Of a stretch of 64,000 nt of DNA, positions 1 to 20,885 are shown piece by piece (the stretch's first letter is position 1; the number at the start of each line of letters is the position of its first letter). This DNA is from Lytechinus pictus (taxonomy: Eukaryota), in the NCBI RefSeq assembly GCF_037042905.1, contig NC_087251.1, forward strand, positions 47,120,001 through 47,184,000, given 5' to 3'. A model generated the notes under the pieces. That model did no database searches. It was given only the letters and a program-made list of their open reading frames with translations, and was not told the origin of the DNA. The translations under genes were made by a program, and so were the position numbers.

Positions 1-3000
1 CCTCCTCCTGCTGGTGGTACTCCTCTTCTACCTCCTCTTCTACCTCCTTCTGTTGGTGGTACTCCTCTTCTACCTCCTCCTGTTGGTGGTACTCCCCTTC
101 TACCTCCCCCTGCTGGTGGTACTCTCCTTCTACCTGCTGCTGCTGGTGGTACTCCCCTTCTACCTCCCCCTGCTGGTGGTACTCATCTTCTACCTCCCCC
201 TGTTGGTGGTACTCCTCTTCTACCTCCTCCTGTTGGTGGTACTCCTCTTCTACCTCCTGCTGGTGGTACTCCTCTTCTACCTCCTCCTGCTGGTGGTACT
301 CCACTTCTACCTCCTCCTACTGGTGGTACTCCTCTTCTACCTCCTCCTGCTGGTGGTACTCCTCTTCTACCTCCTCTTCTACCTCCTCCTGTTGGTGGTA
401 CTCCTCTTCTACCTCCTCCTGTTGGTGGTACTCCCCTTCTACCTCCTCCTGCTGGTGGTACTCTCCTTCTACCTGCTGCTGCTGGTGGTACTCCCCTTCT
501 ACCTCCCCCTGCTGGTGGTACTCATCTTCTACCTCCCCCTGTTGGTGGTACTCCTCTTCTACCTCCTCCTGTTGGTGGTACTCCTCTTCTACCTCCTCCT
601 GTTGGTGGTACTCCTCTTCTACCTCCTCCTGCTGGTGGTACTCCCCTTCTACCTCCCCCTGCTGGTGGTACTCCTCTTCTACCTCCTCCTGTTGGTGGTA
701 CTCCTCTTCTACCTCCTCCTGTTGGTGGTACTCCTCTTCTACCTCCTCCTGTTGGTGGTACTCCTCTTCTACCTCCTCCTGCTGGTGGTACTCCTCTTCT
801 ACCTCCTCCTGCTGGTGGTACTCCCCTTCTACCTCCTCCTGCTGGTGGTACTCTCCTTCTACCTCCTGCTGCTGGTGGTACTCCCCTTCTACCTCCCCCT
901 GCTGGTGGTACTCCACTTCTACCTCCTCCTGCTGGTGGTACTCTCCTTCTACCTCCTGCTGCTGGTGGTACTCCCCTTCTACCTCCCCCTGCTGGTGGTA
1001 CTCCTCTTCTACCTCCTCTTCTACCTCCTCCTGCTGGTGGTACTCCTCTTCTACCTCCTCCTGCTGGTGGTACTCCTCTTCTACCTCCTCTTCTACCTCC
1101 TCCTGTTGGTGGTACTCCTCTTCTACCTCCTCCTGTTGGTGGTACTCCCCTTCTACCTCCTCCTGCTGGTGGTACTCTCCTTCTACCTCCTGCTGCTGGT
1201 GGTACTCCCCTTCTACCTCCCCCTGCTGATGGTACTCCTCTTCTACCTCCTCTTCTACGGCCTGTTGGTGGTACTCCTCTTCTACCTCCTCCTGCTGGTG
1301 GTACTCCCCTCCTACCTCCTCCTGCTGGTGGTACTCTCCTTCTACCTCCTGCTGCTGGTGGTACTCCCCTTCTACCTCCCCCTGCTGGTGGTACTCCACT
1401 TCTACCTCCTGCTGCTGGTGGTACTCCACTTCTACCTCCTCCTACTGGTGGTACTCCTCTTCTACCTCCTCCTGCTGGTGGTACTCCTCTTCTACCTCCT
1501 CTTCTACCTCCTTCTGTTGGTGGTACTCCTCTTCTACCTCCTCCTGTTGGTGGTACTCCCCTTCTACCTCCCCCTGCTGGTGGTACTCTCCTTCTACCTG
1601 CTGCTGCTGGTGGTACTCCCCTTCTACCTCCCCCTGCTGGTGGTACTCATCTTCTACCTCCCCCTGTTGGTGGTACTCCTCTTCTACCTCCTCCTGTTGG
1701 TGGTACTCCTCTTCTACCTCCTGCTGGTGGTACTCCTCTTCTACCTCCTCCTGCTGGTGGTACTCCACTTCTACCTCCTCCTACTGGTGGTACTCCTCTT
1801 CTACCTCCTCCTGCTGGTGGTACTCCTCTTCTACCTCCTCTTCTACCTCCTCCTGTTGGTGGTACTCCTCTTCTACCTCCTCCTGTTGGTGGTACTCCCC
1901 TTCTACCTCCTCCTGCTGGTGGTACTCTCCTTCTACCTGCTGCTGCTGGTGGTACTCCCCTTCTACCTCCCCCTGCTGGTGGTACTCATCTTCTACCTCC
2001 CCCTGTTGGTGGTACTCCTCTTCTACCTCCTCCTGTTGGTGGTACTCCTCTTCTACCTCCTCCTGTTGGTGGTACTCCTCTTCTACCTCCTCCTGCTGGT
2101 GGTACTCCCCTTCTACCTCCCCCTGCTGGTGGTACTCCTCTTCTACCTCCTCCTGCTGGTGGTACTCCTCTTCTACCTCCTCCTGCTGGTGGTACTCCCC
2201 TTCTACCTCCTCCTGCTGGTGGTACTCTCCTTCTACCTCCTGCTGCTGGTGGTACTCCCCTTCTACCTCCCCCTGCTGCATGGTGGTACTCCACTTCTAC
2301 CTCCTCCTGCTGGTGGTACTCTCCTTCTACCTCCTCCTGTTGGTGGTACTCCTCTTCTACCTCCTCCTGTTGGTGGTACTCCCCTTCTACCTCCTCCTGC
2401 TGGTGGTACTCTCCTTCTACCTGCTGCTGCTGGTGGTACTCCCCTTCTACCTCCCCCTGCTGGTGGTACTCCTCTTCTACCTCCCCCTGTTGGTGGTACT
2501 CCTCTTCTACCTCCTCCTGTTGGTGGTACTCCTCTTCTACCTCCTCCTGTTGGTGGTACTCCTCTTCTACCTCCTCCTGCTGGTGGTACTCCTCTTCTAC
2601 CTCCTCCTGCTGGTGGTACTCCCCTTCTACCTCCTCCTGCTGGTGGTACTCTCCTTCTACCTCCTGCTGCTGGTGCTACTCCCCTTTCTACCTCCCCCTG
2701 CTGTTGGTACTCCACTTCTACCTCCTCCTGCTGGTGGTACTCTCCTTCTACCTCCTGCTGCTGGTGGTACTCCCCTTCTACCTCCCCCTGCTGGTGGTAC
2801 TCCTCTTCTACCTCCTCTTCTACCTCCTCCTGCTGGTGGTACTCCTCTTCTACCTCCTCTTCTACCTCCTCCTGTTGGTGGTACTCCTCTTCTACCTCCT
2901 CCTGTTGGTGGTACTCCCCTTCTACCTCCTCCTGCTGGTGGTACTCTCCTTCTACCTCCTGCTGCTGGTGGTACTCCCCTTCTACCTCCCCCTGCTGGTG

Positions 3001-6000
3001 GTACTCCTCTTCTACCTCCTCTTCTATGGCCTGTTGGTGGTACTCCTCTTCTACCTCCTCCTGCTGGTGGTACTCCCCTTCTACCTCCTCCTGCTGGTGG
3101 TACTCTCCTTCTACCTCCTGCTGCTGGTGGTACTCCCCTTCTACCTCCCCCTGCTGGTGGTACTCCACTTCTACCTCCTGCTGCTGGTGGTACTCCCCTT
3201 CTACCTCCTCCTGCTGGTGGTACTCTCCTTCTACCTCCTGCTGCTGGTGGTACTCCCCTTCTACCTCCCCCTGCTGGTGGTACTCCTCTTCTACCTCCTC
3301 TTCTACGGCCTGTTGGTGGTACTCCTCTTCTACCTCCTCCTGCTGGTGGTACTCCCCTTCTACCTCCCCCTGCTGGTGGTACTCCACTTCTACCTCCTCC
3401 TGCTGGTGGTACTCCCCTTCTACCTCCTCCTGCTGGTGGTACTCTCCTTCTACCTCCTGCTGCTGGTGGTACTCCCCTTCTACCTCCCCCTGCTGGTGGT
3501 ACTCCACTTCTACCTCCTGCTGCTGGTGGTACTCCACTTCTACCTCCTGCTGCTGGTGGTACTCCCCTTCTACCTCCTCCTGCTGGTGGTACTCTCCTTC
3601 TACCTCGTGCTGCTGGTGGTACTCCCCTTCTACCTCCCCCTGCTGGTGGTACTCCCCTTCTACCTCCCCCTGCTGGTGGTACTCCACTTCTACCTCCTGC
3701 TGCTGGTGGTACTCCCCTTCTACCTCCTCCTGCTGGTGGTACTCTCCTTCTACCTCCTGCTGCTGGTGGTACTCCCCTTCTACCTCCCCCTGCTGGTGGT
3801 ACTCCACTTCTACCTCCTCCTGCTGGTGGTATACTCCCCTTCTACCTCCTCCTGTTGGTGGTACTCATCTTCTACCTCCTCCTGTTGGTGGTACTCCTCT
3901 TCTACCTCCTCCTGCTGGTGGTACTCCTCTTCTACCTCCTCCTGCTGGTGGTACTCCCCTTCTACCTCCTCCTGCTGGTGGTACTCCTCTTCTACCTCCT
4001 CCTGCTGGTGGTACTCCTCTTCTACCTCCTCCTGCTGGTGGTACTCCTCTTCTACCTCCTCCTGCTGGTGGTACTCCCCGTCTACCTCCTCCTGCTGGTG
4101 GTACTCCTCTTCTACCTCCTCCTGCTGGTGGTACTCCTCTTCTACCTCCTCCTGCTGGTGGTACTCCTCTTCTACCTCCTCCTGCTGGTGGTACTCCTCT
4201 TCTAACTCCTCCTGTCGGTGGTACTCCTCTTCTACCTCCTCCTGCTGGTGGTACTCCTCTTCTACCTCCTCCTGCTGGTGGTACTCCTCTTCTACCTCCT
4301 CTTCTACCTCCTCCTGCTGGTGGTACTCCTCTTCTACCTCCTCCTGCTGGTGGTACTCCTCTTCTACCTCCTCTTCTACCTCCTCCTGTTGGTGGTACTC
4401 CTCTTCTACCTCCTCCTGTTGGTGGTACTCCCCTTCTACCTCCTCCTGCTGGTGGTACTCTCCTTCTACCTCCTGCTGCTGGTGGTACTCCCCTTCTACT
4501 TCCCCCTGCTGGTGGTACTCCTCTTCTACCTCCTCTTCTACGGCCTGTTGGTGGTACTCCTCTTCTACCTCCTCCTGCTGGTGGTACTCCCCTTCTACCT
4601 CCTCCTGCTGGTGGTACTCTCCTTCTACCTCCTGCTGCTGGTGGTACTCCCCTTCTACCTCCCCCTGCTGGTGGTACTCCACTTCTACCTCCTGCTGCTG
4701 GTGGTACTCCCCTTCTACCTCCTCCTGCTGGTGGTACTCTCCTTCTACCTCCTGCTGCTGGTGGTACTCCCCTTCTACCTCCCCCTGCTGGTGGTACTCC
4801 TCTTCTACCTCCTCTTCTACCTCCTCCTGTTGGTGGTACTCCTCTTCTACCTCCTCCTGTTGGTGGTACTCCTCTTCTACCTCCTCCTGCTGGTGGTACT
4901 CCTCTTCTACCTCCTCCTGCTGGTGGTACTCCCCTTCTACCTCCTCCTGCTGGTGGTACTCCTCTTCTACCTCCTCCTGTTGGTGGTACTCCTCTTCTAC
5001 CTCCTCCTGTTGGTGGTACTCCTCTTCTACCTCCTCCTGCTGGTGGTACTCCTCTTCTACCTCCTCCTGCTGGTGGTACTCCCCTTCTACCTCCTCCTGC
5101 TGGTGGTACTCTCCTTCTACCTCCTGCTGCTGGTGGTACTCTCCTTCTACCTCCTCTTGCTGGTGGTACTCCCCGTCTACCTCCTCCTGCTGGTGGTACT
5201 CCTCTTCTACCACCTCCTTTTGGTGGTACTCCCCTTCTACCTCCTCCTGCTGGTGGTACTCCTCTTCTATCTCCTCCTGTTGGTGGTACTTCCCTTCTAC
5301 CTCCTCGATCCTGCTGGTGGTCCTCCTCTTCTACCTCCTCCTGTTGGTGGTACTCCTCTTCTACCTCCTCCTGCTGGTGGTACTCCTCTTCTACCTCCTC
5401 CTGCTGGTGGTACTCCCCTTCTACCTCCTCCTGCTGGTGGTACTCCTCTTCTACCTCCTCCTGTTGGTGGTACTCCTCTTCTACCTCCTCCTGTTGGTGG
5501 TACTCCTCTTCTACCTCCTCCTGCTGGTGGTACTCCTCTTCTACCTCCTCCTGCTGGTGGTACTCCCCTTCTACCTCCTCCTGCTGGTGGTACTCTCCTT
5601 CTACCTCCTGCTGCTGGTGGTACTCTCCTTCTACCTCCTCTTGCTGGTGGTACTCCCCGTCTACCTCCTCCTGCTGGTGGTACTCCTCTTCTACCACCTC
5701 CTTTTGGTGGTACTCCCCTTCTACCTCCTCCTGCTGGTGGTACTCCTCTTCTATCTCCTCCTGTTGGTGGTACTTCCCTTCTACCTCCTCGATCCTGCTG
5801 GTGGTCCTCCTCTTCTACCTCCTCCTGCTGGTGGTACTCCCCTTCTACCTCCTCCTGCTGGTGGTAGTCCCTTTCTACCTCCTCCTGCTAGTGGTACTCC
5901 TCTTCTAGCTACCTCCTCCTGCTGGTGGTTCTCCTCTTCTACCACCTCCTGCTGGTGGTACTCCCCTTCTACCTCCTCCTGCTGGTGGTATACTCCCCTT

Positions 6001-6095
6001 CTACCTACCTCCTCCTGCTGGTGGTACTCCCCTTCTACCTCCTCCTGCTGGTGGTACTCCCCTTCTACCTCCTCCTGCTGGTGGTACTCCTCTTC
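1..6095. repeat. 30-bp minisatellite array (~200 units, consensus GGTGGTACTCCTCTTCTACCTCCTCCTGCT) with higher-order duplications
   Basis: Directly visible tandem unit. Diagnostic variants recur at a period of 1464 bp (CTTCTG at 47 and 1511) and 484 bp (GATC at 5307 and 5791). The - strand reads (EEVEEEYHQQ)n and the + strand reads (GGTPLLPPPA)n. The array runs off the left window edge. Confidence 0.97.
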
Positions 6096-7001
6096 TACAT
6101 TCTGCCCTGCATCTTCATCATCGTCCTCCATCTGCTCCTCTTCCTTCTCCAATTCTTCCAACTCTTCCTTCTGCTCCTCAACGTTCACCTGGACATCCAT
6201 CTTCTCCACAGAAACATCCACCTTAAGTTGCTGCTGATATTCCGAGTCTACCTTCTCTTTCTTTTGTTCATCAGCATCTCCCTGCTCCTGTTCCCGCTTC
6301 TCTTCCTCAACCTCTTCCTTCTGCAGATCTTCAATGCTTCCCACTTCTTCCCACTGCCCCTCTTCAATATTGTATCCCTGCTTCTCTAGCTTCTCGCTGC
6401 CCCTCCTTATCTTTCTGCTCCTTCTCCTCTTCCCTCTGCTGCACCTCAATGCTATAGTCCAGCTCCTTTTCCGGCTACCCCTCAACGAAATCTTCCTCCT
6501 TCTTTTCCATCTGCCCCCGGCCTCTTCAACATCTTCCTGGATCTCTTCTTGCTGCTCCTCATCAATATCAGCCTGCTCTTATTCTTAATTTCTCCTCTTC
6601 CTTTTGCTGCTCCTCAATGCAGTCATCGTGCTCCTCTGCTCCCTGCCCTTCCTCATAATCCTTCTGCTCCTCTTCTTGAGGCTCCTCAACATCTTCCTGC
6701 CCCTCCTCATTCCTTCTGCTGCCCCTGTTCTCTCTGATCGCGCCCCTTCTCAATTTATTCCTTCTCCGTTTTCTCCTGCATGCTCCTCGACCCTATTTTC
6801 CATCTTCTCTTCCTCCTCCTGCTCCTCATTTCCTGCTCTTCATCCATGACCTCTTCCACTTTCTTCTCTTCTACTGGCCCGAGAATGTAATATCCAATAG
6901 GCCATTGACTGATCTAACCAGAAGGTCACTGAAGAATACACCGAAATCAAAGGCCAGTGGGTCCGAGAGTTGTTCTTGATAAGGTATAATGACCCGTTCA
7001 C
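5781..7001 (-). pseudogene. Frameshifted Glu/Gln/Lys-rich coding-like exon leading into the EEVEEEYHQQ repeat (pseudogene or unpolished assembly)
   Basis: Non-repetitive acidic reading frame (...EEQKEELEELEKEEEQMEDDDEDAGQNVEEEYHQQ) runs in frame into the repeat. A strong acceptor TTTTTTTTTGCAG lies at ~7002-7014 on the - strand. There are several frameshifts and stops between 6485 and 6900. Confidence 0.4.
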
Positions 7002-18995: not shown

Positions 18996-19169
18996 GTAAG
19001 AGAAACATCCAGCACATGGGAGGTCAGTTGAAATTAAACCAGCATCGTAATGACATGGCATATAACTTCTTCAAGATGGCCGTCCAGAAGAAGTTGACCC
19101 GAGGAAGGAAGACCATGCACATTGTGGCAGCATGTCTGTACCTGGTCTGTCGACTTGAAGGCACCCCTC
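18996..19169 (+). CDS. BRF1: BRF1 coding exon 3 (cyclin-fold repeat 1)
   Basis: 174 nt, [16 protein letters not shown]...[37 protein letters not shown]. Ends at the U12 donor GTATCCTTT. Confidence 0.96.
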
Positions 19170-19233
19170 GTATCCTTTTAAAACTTGAGAAATGTAGTCG
19201 CAGCAGACAATGATTTCATGAGAAGGTCTTTAA

Positions 19234-19512
19234 GAAGCGCCGTGGTGTAGCGGTTCTGACTCTCGCCCTGTAATCAGAGGGTCGTGTGTTCCGATCCCAC
19301 CATGGCCCAGCGTCCTTTGGCAAGGCATCAATCCACACTTTGTCACTCTCACCCAGGTGCTAATTGGGTACCGATAGGAAACAACCGTCATTGTGGTTGG
19401 TTTAGCAAGTGTGCGCCTGACAGGCTGCTTGAAATGCTATGAATCCAGTGACCGGGTAATAATGATTGTGTAGCACTTTGAGCATATATATAAATGCCAA
19501 TTATTATTATTT
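19234..19512 (+). mobile_element. tRNA-derived SINE
   Basis: tRNA-like head with A box (TGGTGTAGCGG) and degenerate B box (GTTCCGATCC). Central GTCCTTTGGCAAGGCA..CACCCAGGTG..ATTGGGTACC domain and (TTA)n tail. Confidence 0.8.
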
Positions 19513-19634
19513 TTATTTTAAAATCAAGGTTTATTGTCACAATATAATCGTAGATTAAGACCTGGGTCCCATAACACAAATGATAGCGAATTATAATACA
19601 CATTTTTATGATTTTTATGATTGATTGTACACTG

Positions 19635-20219
19635 ATGTTGTTTGAAGGTTTGCATGGTGGTATGTACAATCGCTGATGTGGTTTACGGTACACCATGTGT
19701 AGTGTCATAGAAACAGTGGATAGAAGAAGAGAAGAAATGGATAGGCGAGAAAGTGGAGATTTGAGAGTAGAGTATTCTTTCTTGTAAGTAGTCCTGAAAA
19801 GGACTGTAAACCAGGAAAGATTGAAGAGTTGAGAACAGCTTGAGTAGTAGCGCCGATGAGGAGATGCTGGCTTGAGTAGGCGAGTAGAGATGGTGAGTAG
19901 TAGAGAGACTCGACGTTTCGGGCAGGTTGACTGTCCGTCTTCAGAAGACGGACAGTCAACCTGCCCGAAACGTCGAGTCTCTCTACTACTCACCATCTCT
20001 ACTCGCCTACTCAAGCCAGCATCTCCTCATCGGCGCTACTACTCAAGCTGTTCTCAACTCTTCAATCTTTCCTGGTTTACAGTCCTTTTCAGGACTACTT
20101 ACAAGAAAGAATACTCTACTCTCAAATCTCCACTTTCTCGCCTATCCATTTCTTCTCTTCTTCTATCCACTGTTTCTATGACACTACACATGGTGTACCG
20201 TAAACCACATCAGCGATTG
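19635..20219 (-). mobile_element. Penelope-like element pLTR fragment in inverted (palindromic) duplication, with hammerhead ribozyme core
   Basis: Perfect inverted repeat 19667-19942 / 19944-20219 with a 1-nt spacer. The - strand reads CTGAAGA-C-GGACAG-TCAAC-CTGCCC-GAAAC-GTCGA-GTC. Flanked by the 16-bp direct repeat GATTGATTGTACACTG (19619-19634, 20215-20230). Inserted within a short MITE (GGGTCCCATAACACAAA at 19564 ... TTTGTGTTAAGGGCCC at ~20294). Confidence 0.7.
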
Positions 20220-20853
20220 ATTGTACACTGTAGTCAATGCAATCGATCATAAAGATATTTTTAGGATGGTTGCTAAGCTTTGTGTTAAGGGCCCCATTTA
20301 CATAAACCTAACATTGTGAAATCAGGAAATCTAAGCTGAAACCCCCCCCTGAGTACACTTAAGATTGCCATCGCAGATTAGCACATATGGGACAGTTTAT
20401 TAGAATTATTGCTGAGAAAATGACCTGGCTGAAATGCTTTGCTTGTACCATAATTTTTTGGCAGATAATTCAAGCTCTTAGATGGTAATTTAATTTGATT
20501 CTGTTAAAACTCAGTTTGAAAATTGATACCACAACTGGCTCTTATCCTTTGACCAGCTACCTTTGGTTTGATAAAAATATGCGGATAGTACAAGATGAGT
20601 GTCGCGCTTCTCGAGGACAAGTATGTGGCCTTGACCATTTGTACAATTTGTCAAAAAGGAGAAATTTGAGATATATTATTGTCTCTAGAATCGTATTGGT
20701 GATATAATTATTATAATCTTAGTATTTGCTGTAATGCTGTAATAATATGCTGTAACGCGCTTTGAGCCATTCTGGGAAAAGCGCTTTATAAAAATTGGCT
20801 ATTATTATTATTATTATTATTTGTATATCATCCTTAATATAAACTTTGAACAG

Positions 20854-20885
20854 ATATGTTGCTGGATCTCAGTGATTTACTGCAG
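20854..20885 (+). CDS. BRF1: BRF1 coding exon 4 (32-nt mini-exon)
   Basis: CAG|AT ATG TTG CTG GAT CTC AGT GAT TTA CTG CAG|GTAAG = HMLLDLSDLLQ, highly conserved in BRF1. Confidence 0.96.

Follow-up and report, generated by a model that had tools for sequence, protein, structure and literature searches.

Endonuclease-positive (EN+) Penelope-like elements (PLEs) are defined by a layout in which a reverse transcriptase (RT) domain is followed by a GIY-YIG endonuclease, pseudo-long terminal repeats (pLTRs) accompany the coding region, and an inverted copy lies upstream (PMC8557442, PMC11167929). Their insertions include inverted, 5′-truncated copies and carry a 30–40-bp tail at one end only (PMC8557442). 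In vitro, an Anolis PLE protein, a predicted dimer, nicks both strands of its target and extends them, with reverse transcription starting at two internal sites that bracket the tail (PMC11167929). The pLTRs of metazoan PLEs also house minimal hammerhead ribozymes (min-HHRs), in which a CUGANGA core, an extra nucleotide before helix II, a G10.1–C11.1 pair, a long helix II and a short helix I are combined with GAAAC-GUC, a palindromic 15.2/16.2 pair and no loop 3 (PMC4209133). Here, we analyzed a 64,000-nt stretch of the Lytechinus pictus genome (assembly GCF_037042905.1, contig NC_087251.1, positions 47,120,001 to 47,184,000 of the forward strand; hereafter the window), in which an intron of a BRF1-like gene contains a long perfect palindrome whose arms meet at the 5′ edge of a hammerhead motif. 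The palindrome is an ordinary young PLE insertion consisting of two inverted end-pieces in a known layout, and not a new kind of element.

A first-pass annotation of the window, made by reading the sequence, had described a perfect 553-bp palindrome with 276-bp arms and a 1-nt spacer, flanked by a 16-bp direct repeat, and a repeat search confirmed both features. The arms, at 19667–19942 and 19944–20219 (276 nt each), are 100% complementary and are separated only by A19943; a palindrome of this kind is far above chance expectation. At its centre the − strand reads CTGAAGAC (CUGAAGAC) and the + strand CAGAAGAC, and the spacer, a U on the − strand, completes the sequence CUGAAGA on that strand only. 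The direct repeat, GATTGATTGTACACTG, is exact over 16 nt at 19619–19634 and 20215–20230. On the left, homology to the element reaches 32 nt past the palindrome (19635–19666), as far as the first repeat copy, while on the right the 3′-most 5 nt of the arm (GATTG, 20215–20219) overlap the second.

The flanks of the insert (approximately 19520–19634 and 20215–20300) belong to an older dispersed repeat, with 77–88% identity among the first-look candidates, which number more than 130 for the left flank and more than 320 for the right. All nine of the host-repeat paralogues that were fetched read through the site as TTTATGATTGATTGTACA(C/T)TG joined to TAGTCAATGC, with the 16-mer present once, uninterrupted, and the right flank following it directly; at a tenth locus (G000:C4:7570775-7570916), the left- and right-flank matches overlap by exactly 16 nt. 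As these ten paralogous empty sites each hold a single 16-mer, the direct repeat represents a genuine target-site duplication, and the insertion amounts to the 580 bp from 19635 to 20214. The earlier argument that the flanking duplication speaks against an artefact is thereby strengthened, the target being intact in all ten paralogues. The GATTGTACA similarity shared by element and target, noted at the same time, is native to the host repeat and provides 5 nt (GATTG) of possible primer–template pairing at the right junction. Twenty-four public runs were also consulted; they contain at most 27% of the sampled words, and two runs of DNA contigs (X1 and X3) and two RNA runs (X23 and X24) were mapped. 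The joint from 19631 to 20265 that X1 and X3 contain is consistent with empty paralogues of the host repeat. An imperfect inverted repeat of 25 nt lies close to the ends of the host repeat (19563–19587 and 20272–20296), which is possibly MITE-like.

The identity of the inserted DNA was established by searching the genome with a single arm, which returned 1143 first-look candidates, many of them 96–100% identical and often arranged as inverted pairs. The 33-nt hammerhead core alone has 193 exact copies in the genome, compared with none for the reversed control. Among the matches is a full natural copy, L031, and positions 3767–6985 of this locus (on G000:C17) serve as the coordinate reference (ref) throughout. 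L031 is bounded by a 13-bp target-site duplication and contains, in order, an inverted 5′-truncated piece (2813–3181), a direct 5′-truncated pLTR (2967–3219), an ORF, a 3′ untranslated region and a complete 3′ pLTR. The ORF runs uninterrupted for 894 amino acids and encodes an RVT_1 domain (E = 8.4e-12; 45.7 bits against a cut-off of 29.6) and, on its C-terminal third, a GIY-YIG domain (PF01541; 25.6 bits against a cut-off of 22.6) with the motif GVYRIPCDCGKVYIGETGR followed by His residues.

Comparison with L031 by BLAST places the left arm and its extension at ref 2906–3216 and the right arm at ref 2908–3183; the arms are 99.3–99.4% identical to the full copy (99.4% for the left arm) and identical to each other. 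The left arm (19667–19942) is a 5′-truncated pLTR piece with its sense strand on the − strand, and its 32-nt extension (19635–19666, −; ref 3184–3216) is the PLE tail, which holds the element ATG (ref 3195; 19655–19653) and the first 22 nt of the ORF; a window ORF at 19524–19655 (−) starts with MQTFKQH, as the PLE ORF does. The right arm (19944–20219) is a 5′-truncated piece with its sense on the + strand, and it finishes at the end used by tail-less family members (ref 3183), its final GATTG being common to the target. The window copy, made up of these two pLTR pieces, has no ORF of its own. By domain content and layout, the arms are identified as pieces of the 3′ pLTR of a young EN+ PLE, the first-pass annotation having already assigned them to a Penelope-like pLTR.

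The element thus resembles EN+ PLEs of the Penelope/Poseidon type (Evgen'ev & Arkhipova 2005 as cited in PMC8557442; PMC11167929) in its single ORF with RT preceding a C-terminal GIY-YIG domain, in its pLTRs with an embedded hammerhead, in the head-to-head inverted copy and the frequent 5′ truncation, in a tail of 32–36 nt at one end only, and in target-site duplications of variable length (13 bp in L031 and 16 bp in the window). The window copy differs in that it consists of two pLTR pieces cut at the same point, hence its perfect palindrome. A further difference from the Anolis PLE concerns the hammerhead, which overlaps the ORF start in Anolis; in the present family it forms the extreme 5′ edge of the mobilised unit, with approximately 290 nt between it and the downstream ATG. 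Animal non-LTR retrozymes, which form head-to-tail tandem arrays and are thought to act through circular RNA (bioRxiv 10.64898/2026.07.22.740005), are likewise non-coding, pLTR-derived units of approximately 300 nt with a type I hammerhead that far outnumber autonomous copies. The units described here are, in contrast, dispersed, and occur singly or head-to-head: among the first 100 of the 193 core copies no head-to-tail arrays of ~300-nt units were found, close neighbours were mostly on opposite strands, and the same-strand neighbours were 48 and 128 nt apart.

To place the window copy in its family, an unbiased sample of 60 of the 193 loci with the exact 33-nt core was combined with loci found earlier and mapped to the reference. 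The 5′ ends of the 109 arms are strongly clustered: 70 arms, or approximately two thirds, start at ref 2890–2912, within roughly 12 nt of the window joint, with 12 arms reaching further upstream and 27 being shorter. The window joint is therefore the usual 5′ end of the family, and neither the special break at the ribozyme that had been suggested nor the description of the palindrome as centred on the ribozyme core is sustained, the arms being joined at the 5′ edge of the motif. The sample contains 37 head-to-head pairs, in most of which the two GAAGAC boxes are 1–28 nt apart, and the 1-nt joint of the window is found at two other, older loci. Head-to-head architecture is thus the family norm and a known PLE trait, and is not unusual in this genome.

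The 3′ ends of the arms follow a strict rule. When a 3′ end at ref 3205 or beyond is scored as a tail and one at 3170–3195 as no tail, exactly one arm has a tail in 32 of 32 classifiable pairs, with no tail/tail and no no-tail/no-tail combinations. Single copies fall into both classes (22 with a tail and 12 without), and if the two arms chose independently at these frequencies the probability of 32 discordant pairs among 32 would be ~1e-11. The tail-less ends are confined to ref 3180–3189 in the 32 pairs, whose targets are unrelated, and the same end is used by the 12 tail-less single copies. The two arms need not be of equal length: in L031 the inverted piece covers 2813–3181 whereas the direct copy continues through the whole ORF, in L032 the arms span 2799–3180 and 1947–3216, and L033 and L009 also have a much longer direct arm, the excess at such loci being hundreds to thousands of nucleotides.

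Six of the 20 long-arm pairs (the window, L005, L010, L041, L050 and L055) are 100% identical over 274–279 nt, and arm-to-arm mismatches range from 0 to 11 across similar loci, at least 30 others sharing the architecture. The youngest subfamily, recognized by an exact 21-mer, comprises 14 arms at eight loci, seven of which have an inverted partner. Because its arms are identical to each other and 99.3–99.4% identical to L031, and because its subfamily amounts to only 14 arms at eight loci, the window insertion is dated as very recent, in agreement with the first-pass annotation.

In L1 twin priming, both nicked target strands prime cDNA synthesis, so that an inverted segment comes to lie beside a direct segment within one target-site duplication; the second primer anneals internally, the inverted segment is the more 5′ of the two and perfect palindromes are not produced. 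The PLE pairs differ from this arrangement in that both arms include the 3′ end of the element, start at two defined sites separated by approximately 33 nt and extend to a common 5′ end. We infer in which order the events took place, that both strands were used and how the products were joined, and consider it probable that the insert was created in one recent PLE retrotransposition, by target-primed reverse transcription from both nicked strands with the arms joined head-to-head. The GIY-YIG endonuclease would have nicked the older dispersed repeat within the BRF1-like intron at positions 16 bp apart, and each target 3′ end would then have primed reverse transcription of a short pLTR RNA. The left-arm cDNA would have started at the tail site (ref ~3216), and the right-arm cDNA at the no-tail site ~33 nt upstream (ref ~3183), aided by the 5-nt GATTG microhomology. 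Both cDNAs would have reached the usual 5′ end of the template, that is the 5′ edge of the hammerhead motif, where they would have been joined head-to-head with one nucleotide between them, and fill-in would have duplicated the 16-bp target. Of the two routes offered by the first-pass annotation, fold-back or twin priming, it is the priming on both strands that is retained. In its favour, two RNA-templated events are required in those pairs whose direct arm far exceeds the inverted one.

Several points weigh against this account. Paired arms are nearly identical even in subfamilies that lie 4–20% from the reference, which is not predicted if two RNAs were drawn from a mixed pool. The one-tail rule is stricter than the in vitro report, in which the start site showed no strand difference (PMC11167929). 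The 5′ boundary could have either of two causes (below), and no record in X1, X3, X23 or X24 spans the palindrome or its junctions, the unique flank at 20308–20550 having little or no depth in these runs. The near identity of the arms would be accounted for if one RNA was copied twice, or if one arm was copied from the other, and each possibility has its own version of events.

In the first, which we regard as a tentative refinement with perhaps a modest chance of being correct, the two RTs of a dimeric PLE particle would be primed from opposite target strands and would work in tandem along a single RNA molecule. The starts would be ~33–36 nt apart, the cDNA of the leading enzyme would be displaced by the trailing one, and both enzymes would run off the template at a common 5′ end. 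One tail per pair, near-identical arms and blunt joints would all follow from such tandem copying of one RNA.

In the second, a single cDNA primed by the + strand from the tail site would snap back, copy itself and join the right flank through GATTG. The perfectly identical arms with a turn of 0–1 nt, the near identity of paired arms at other loci, close to the reference or far from it, and the 5-nt microhomology at the right junction are all as expected from fold-back. However, the tail-less ends are too tight for variable microhomology, falling at ref 3180–3189 at unrelated targets and in 12 single copies, and so indicate a defined initiation site; many joints are asymmetric, and some pairs have a direct arm longer by kilobases that self-copying could not generate; and PLE protein extends both strands in vitro (PMC11167929). 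We therefore consider fold-back unlikely, and this half of the original proposal is disfavoured.

The identity of the arms could also be explained by an older insertion whose arms were kept identical by gene conversion within the palindrome, as three pairs that lie 4–5% from the reference (L041, L050 and L055) still have arms that are 100% identical. These pairs may, however, be young copies of another master element, and the window arms match an intact full copy at 99.3–99.4% identity, their subfamily has only eight loci and the 16-bp duplication around them is perfect, making this a very improbable history. Least credible of all is an assembly artefact, whether from a chimeric fold-back read or from wrongly joined repeats. 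Library preparation and assembly are known to generate perfect palindromes, PLE inverted structures are known to trouble assemblies (PMC8557442) and the mapped runs, with their low flank depth, yielded no spanning read. Against this, the insert has unique flanks, duplicates exactly 16 bp of a target that ten paralogues have without interruption, carries a PLE-specific tail on one side only, and shares its architecture with 30 or more loci whose 0 to 11 mismatches form an age series.

The centre of the palindrome was examined against the published min-HHR. On the − strand (19908–19944) the motif consists of CUGAAGA, C, the helix II hairpin GGACAG-UCAAC-CUGCCC, GAAAC, and GUC followed by GAGU, and by its sequence it matches the published PLE min-HHR feature by feature (PMC4209133), including the extra nucleotide between A9 and G10.1, the 6-bp helix II and, in intact copies, a 4-bp helix I. 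The catalytic core CUGANGA...GAAA...UH is present in the − strand arm, while the mirror copy on the + strand (cAGAAGAC, 19944–19978) lacks C3, U4 and the 5′ strand of helix I; the earlier observation that CAGAAGA breaks the core in this arm is thus correct. Both arms start at or after CUGAAGA, so that the 5′ strand of helix I is absent from the insert, as had been noted, and it could be recovered from intact copies as ACUC, pairing with GAGU. The window subfamily also departs from the published motif in an A·C mismatch at 10.3/11.3 of helix II, a position that is A-U in an older genomic variant and in most copies in related DNA runs.

The motif recurs in the genome well beyond this subfamily. 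A relaxed pattern (CTGANGANG, 10–20 nt, CGAAACGTC) has 646 matches in the genome compared with one in the reversed control, and its helix II has a mean of 3.6 uninterrupted pairs, against 1.5 when shuffled. Between families, helix II shows compensatory changes (GGACAG/CUGUCC, GACAAG/CUUGUC, GACCAG/CUGGUC, GAGCA/UGCUC and GUCU(A)GC/GCAGAC) and N7 is any of the four bases, whereas helix I covaries only weakly (ACUC/GAGU, UCUC/GAGA and GC/GC). The presence of many consensus families with compensatory changes in a single genome, and of dual motifs on opposite strands, was likewise noted in the original description of min-HHRs (Cervera & De la Pena 2014, PMC4209133). The genome has at least four further families of min-hammerheads, which differ in helix II and N7 (for example at C2:28133552-28133648 and C2:783041-783137); these also occur as head-to-head pairs, with ~29 nt between the cores, and several of their copies lose similarity just upstream of helix I.

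The minimum free energy (MFE) fold of the intact motif gives helix I (ACUC/GAGU, 4 bp) and helix II exactly, with the core unpaired. Cleavage is likely to be directed to the position after the first GUC, between ref 2938 and 2939 (19974 and 19975 on the + strand, 19912 and 19911 on the − strand), because helix I ACUC/GAGU then forms, as in published min-HHRs and in the MFE fold. An earlier parse, with a UCGA-containing loop 3 (GUCGA) and cleavage after a second GUC, is probably wrong: both flanks are then pyrimidine-rich and helix I cannot pair. The covariance-model search proposed by the first-pass annotation returned no Rfam hammerhead in the window region, in 4.4 kb of L031 or, even at E ≤ 10, in 131 nt of an intact copy, a result that is expected because min-HHRs lack helix III. 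Other Rfam matches were set aside: mir-3122 (62.7 bits against a gathering threshold of 92), MIR1432 and mir-422 at 19908–19978 are sub-threshold, appear on both strands and echo the central hairpin, and Histone3 (17 bits against a cut-off of 34) reflects the shape of the small conserved hairpin at 20072–20096. The self-cleavage of published min-HHRs is poor and requires dimers or protein (PMC4209133, PMC11167929). The window copy is most likely inert: part of the motif is missing, and in a transcript spanning both arms the remainder would be enclosed in a 276-bp hairpin, predicted to fold at −556.5 kcal/mol.

To ask whether hammerhead-cleaved RNA serves as the template, the 5′ boundary of the family was compared with the cut site. 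The family 5′ ends cluster at ref 2890–2912 and show no enrichment at the predicted cut (2938/2939), and because ends at 2939 are not enriched the boundary does not appear to correspond to the ribozyme cut site. No copy that begins precisely at the cut was recovered by pattern matching, although this search could draw on just the 14 arms that match the probe exactly. Several joints in the contigs of related DNA runs fall exactly at 19975 or 19911, the first nucleotide after the predicted cut, and these may be copies of ribozyme-cleaved RNA. By eye, a TATA-like sequence (CATAAGTA) can be recognized 25–32 nt upstream of the boundary, and TCACTCC near ref 2902 resembles an Inr. In one case, the single copy L078 (G000:C4:17913866-17915498; 12-bp target-site duplication), an extra G lies between the duplication and A2902, the outcome anticipated for copying of a capped RNA whose first nucleotide is A2902. 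The boundary is thus plausibly a transcription start, the alternative being a stop of the reverse transcriptase at a folded or protein-bound motif.

Two blocks of the pLTR are conserved across diverged PLE subfamilies. One is the hammerhead block at ref 2900–2942. The other is a 25-nt hairpin block, AGUCC-UUUUCA-GGACU, at ref 3036–3060 (20072–20096 on the + strand, mirrored at 19790–19814 on the − strand), which retains 96–100% identity where the rest of the subfamily pLTR has only 73–80% and is kept in L038, L046, L048, L066, L071, L085, L094 and L095. Its conservation suggests that it is possibly a candidate protein-recognition element.

The insertion lies in a host intron (19170–20854, +) that the first-pass annotation had assigned to the U12 type in a BRF1-like gene, and the exon and splice-signal consensus agree with this assignment. 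The intron is flanked by TFIIB/BRF1-like exons at 18996–19169 and 20855–20885 (...MLLDLSDLLQ), and the translation of the former matches cyclin repeat 1 of TFIIB and of the 70-kDa TFIIIB subunit (Brf1) in solved structures. We take the gene to be BRF1 rather than TFIIB on the basis of the Brf1 match and of comparison with the vertebrate protein. By consensus match, the intron appears to be U12-type: it opens with GTATCCTTT at 19170, in line with the GTATCCTT consensus of 5′ splice sites of this type, and TCCTTAAT (20831–20838), corresponding to the branch-site consensus TCCTTAAY, lies 16 nt before a 3′ splice site whose CAG ends at 20854. An (ATT)n microsatellite (20804–20830) is immediately upstream of the putative branch site. 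The same intron contains a tRNA-derived SINE-like repeat at 19230–19480, which has a loose-end consensus with the tRNA T-arm GGTTCGAATCC, very high depth in the DNA contigs and hundreds of RNA reads.

The locus offers a clean, dated PLE insertion within a gene for an essential Pol III factor, in an intron that appears to belong to the minor-spliceosome class. A transcript crossing both arms could fold into 276 bp of perfect double-stranded RNA, and effects of this potential duplex on splicing, editing or small RNAs would be worth a look in any RNA data from the same individual. The ADAR or Dicer substrate and the cruciform foreseen by the first-pass annotation are likewise potential consequences. 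For the family as a whole, the single tail per pair, the identical arms and the clustering of 5′ ends beside the hammerhead parallel in vivo, and in quantitative form, the in vitro finding that both target strands are nicked and extended from two internal start sites, and these regularities suggest a testable model of the PLE integration complex. If two RTs do copy one RNA in tandem, short perfect palindromes would be footprints of the geometry of that complex, and the hammerhead-led pLTR RNA of ~300 nt would be its preferred non-autonomous template.

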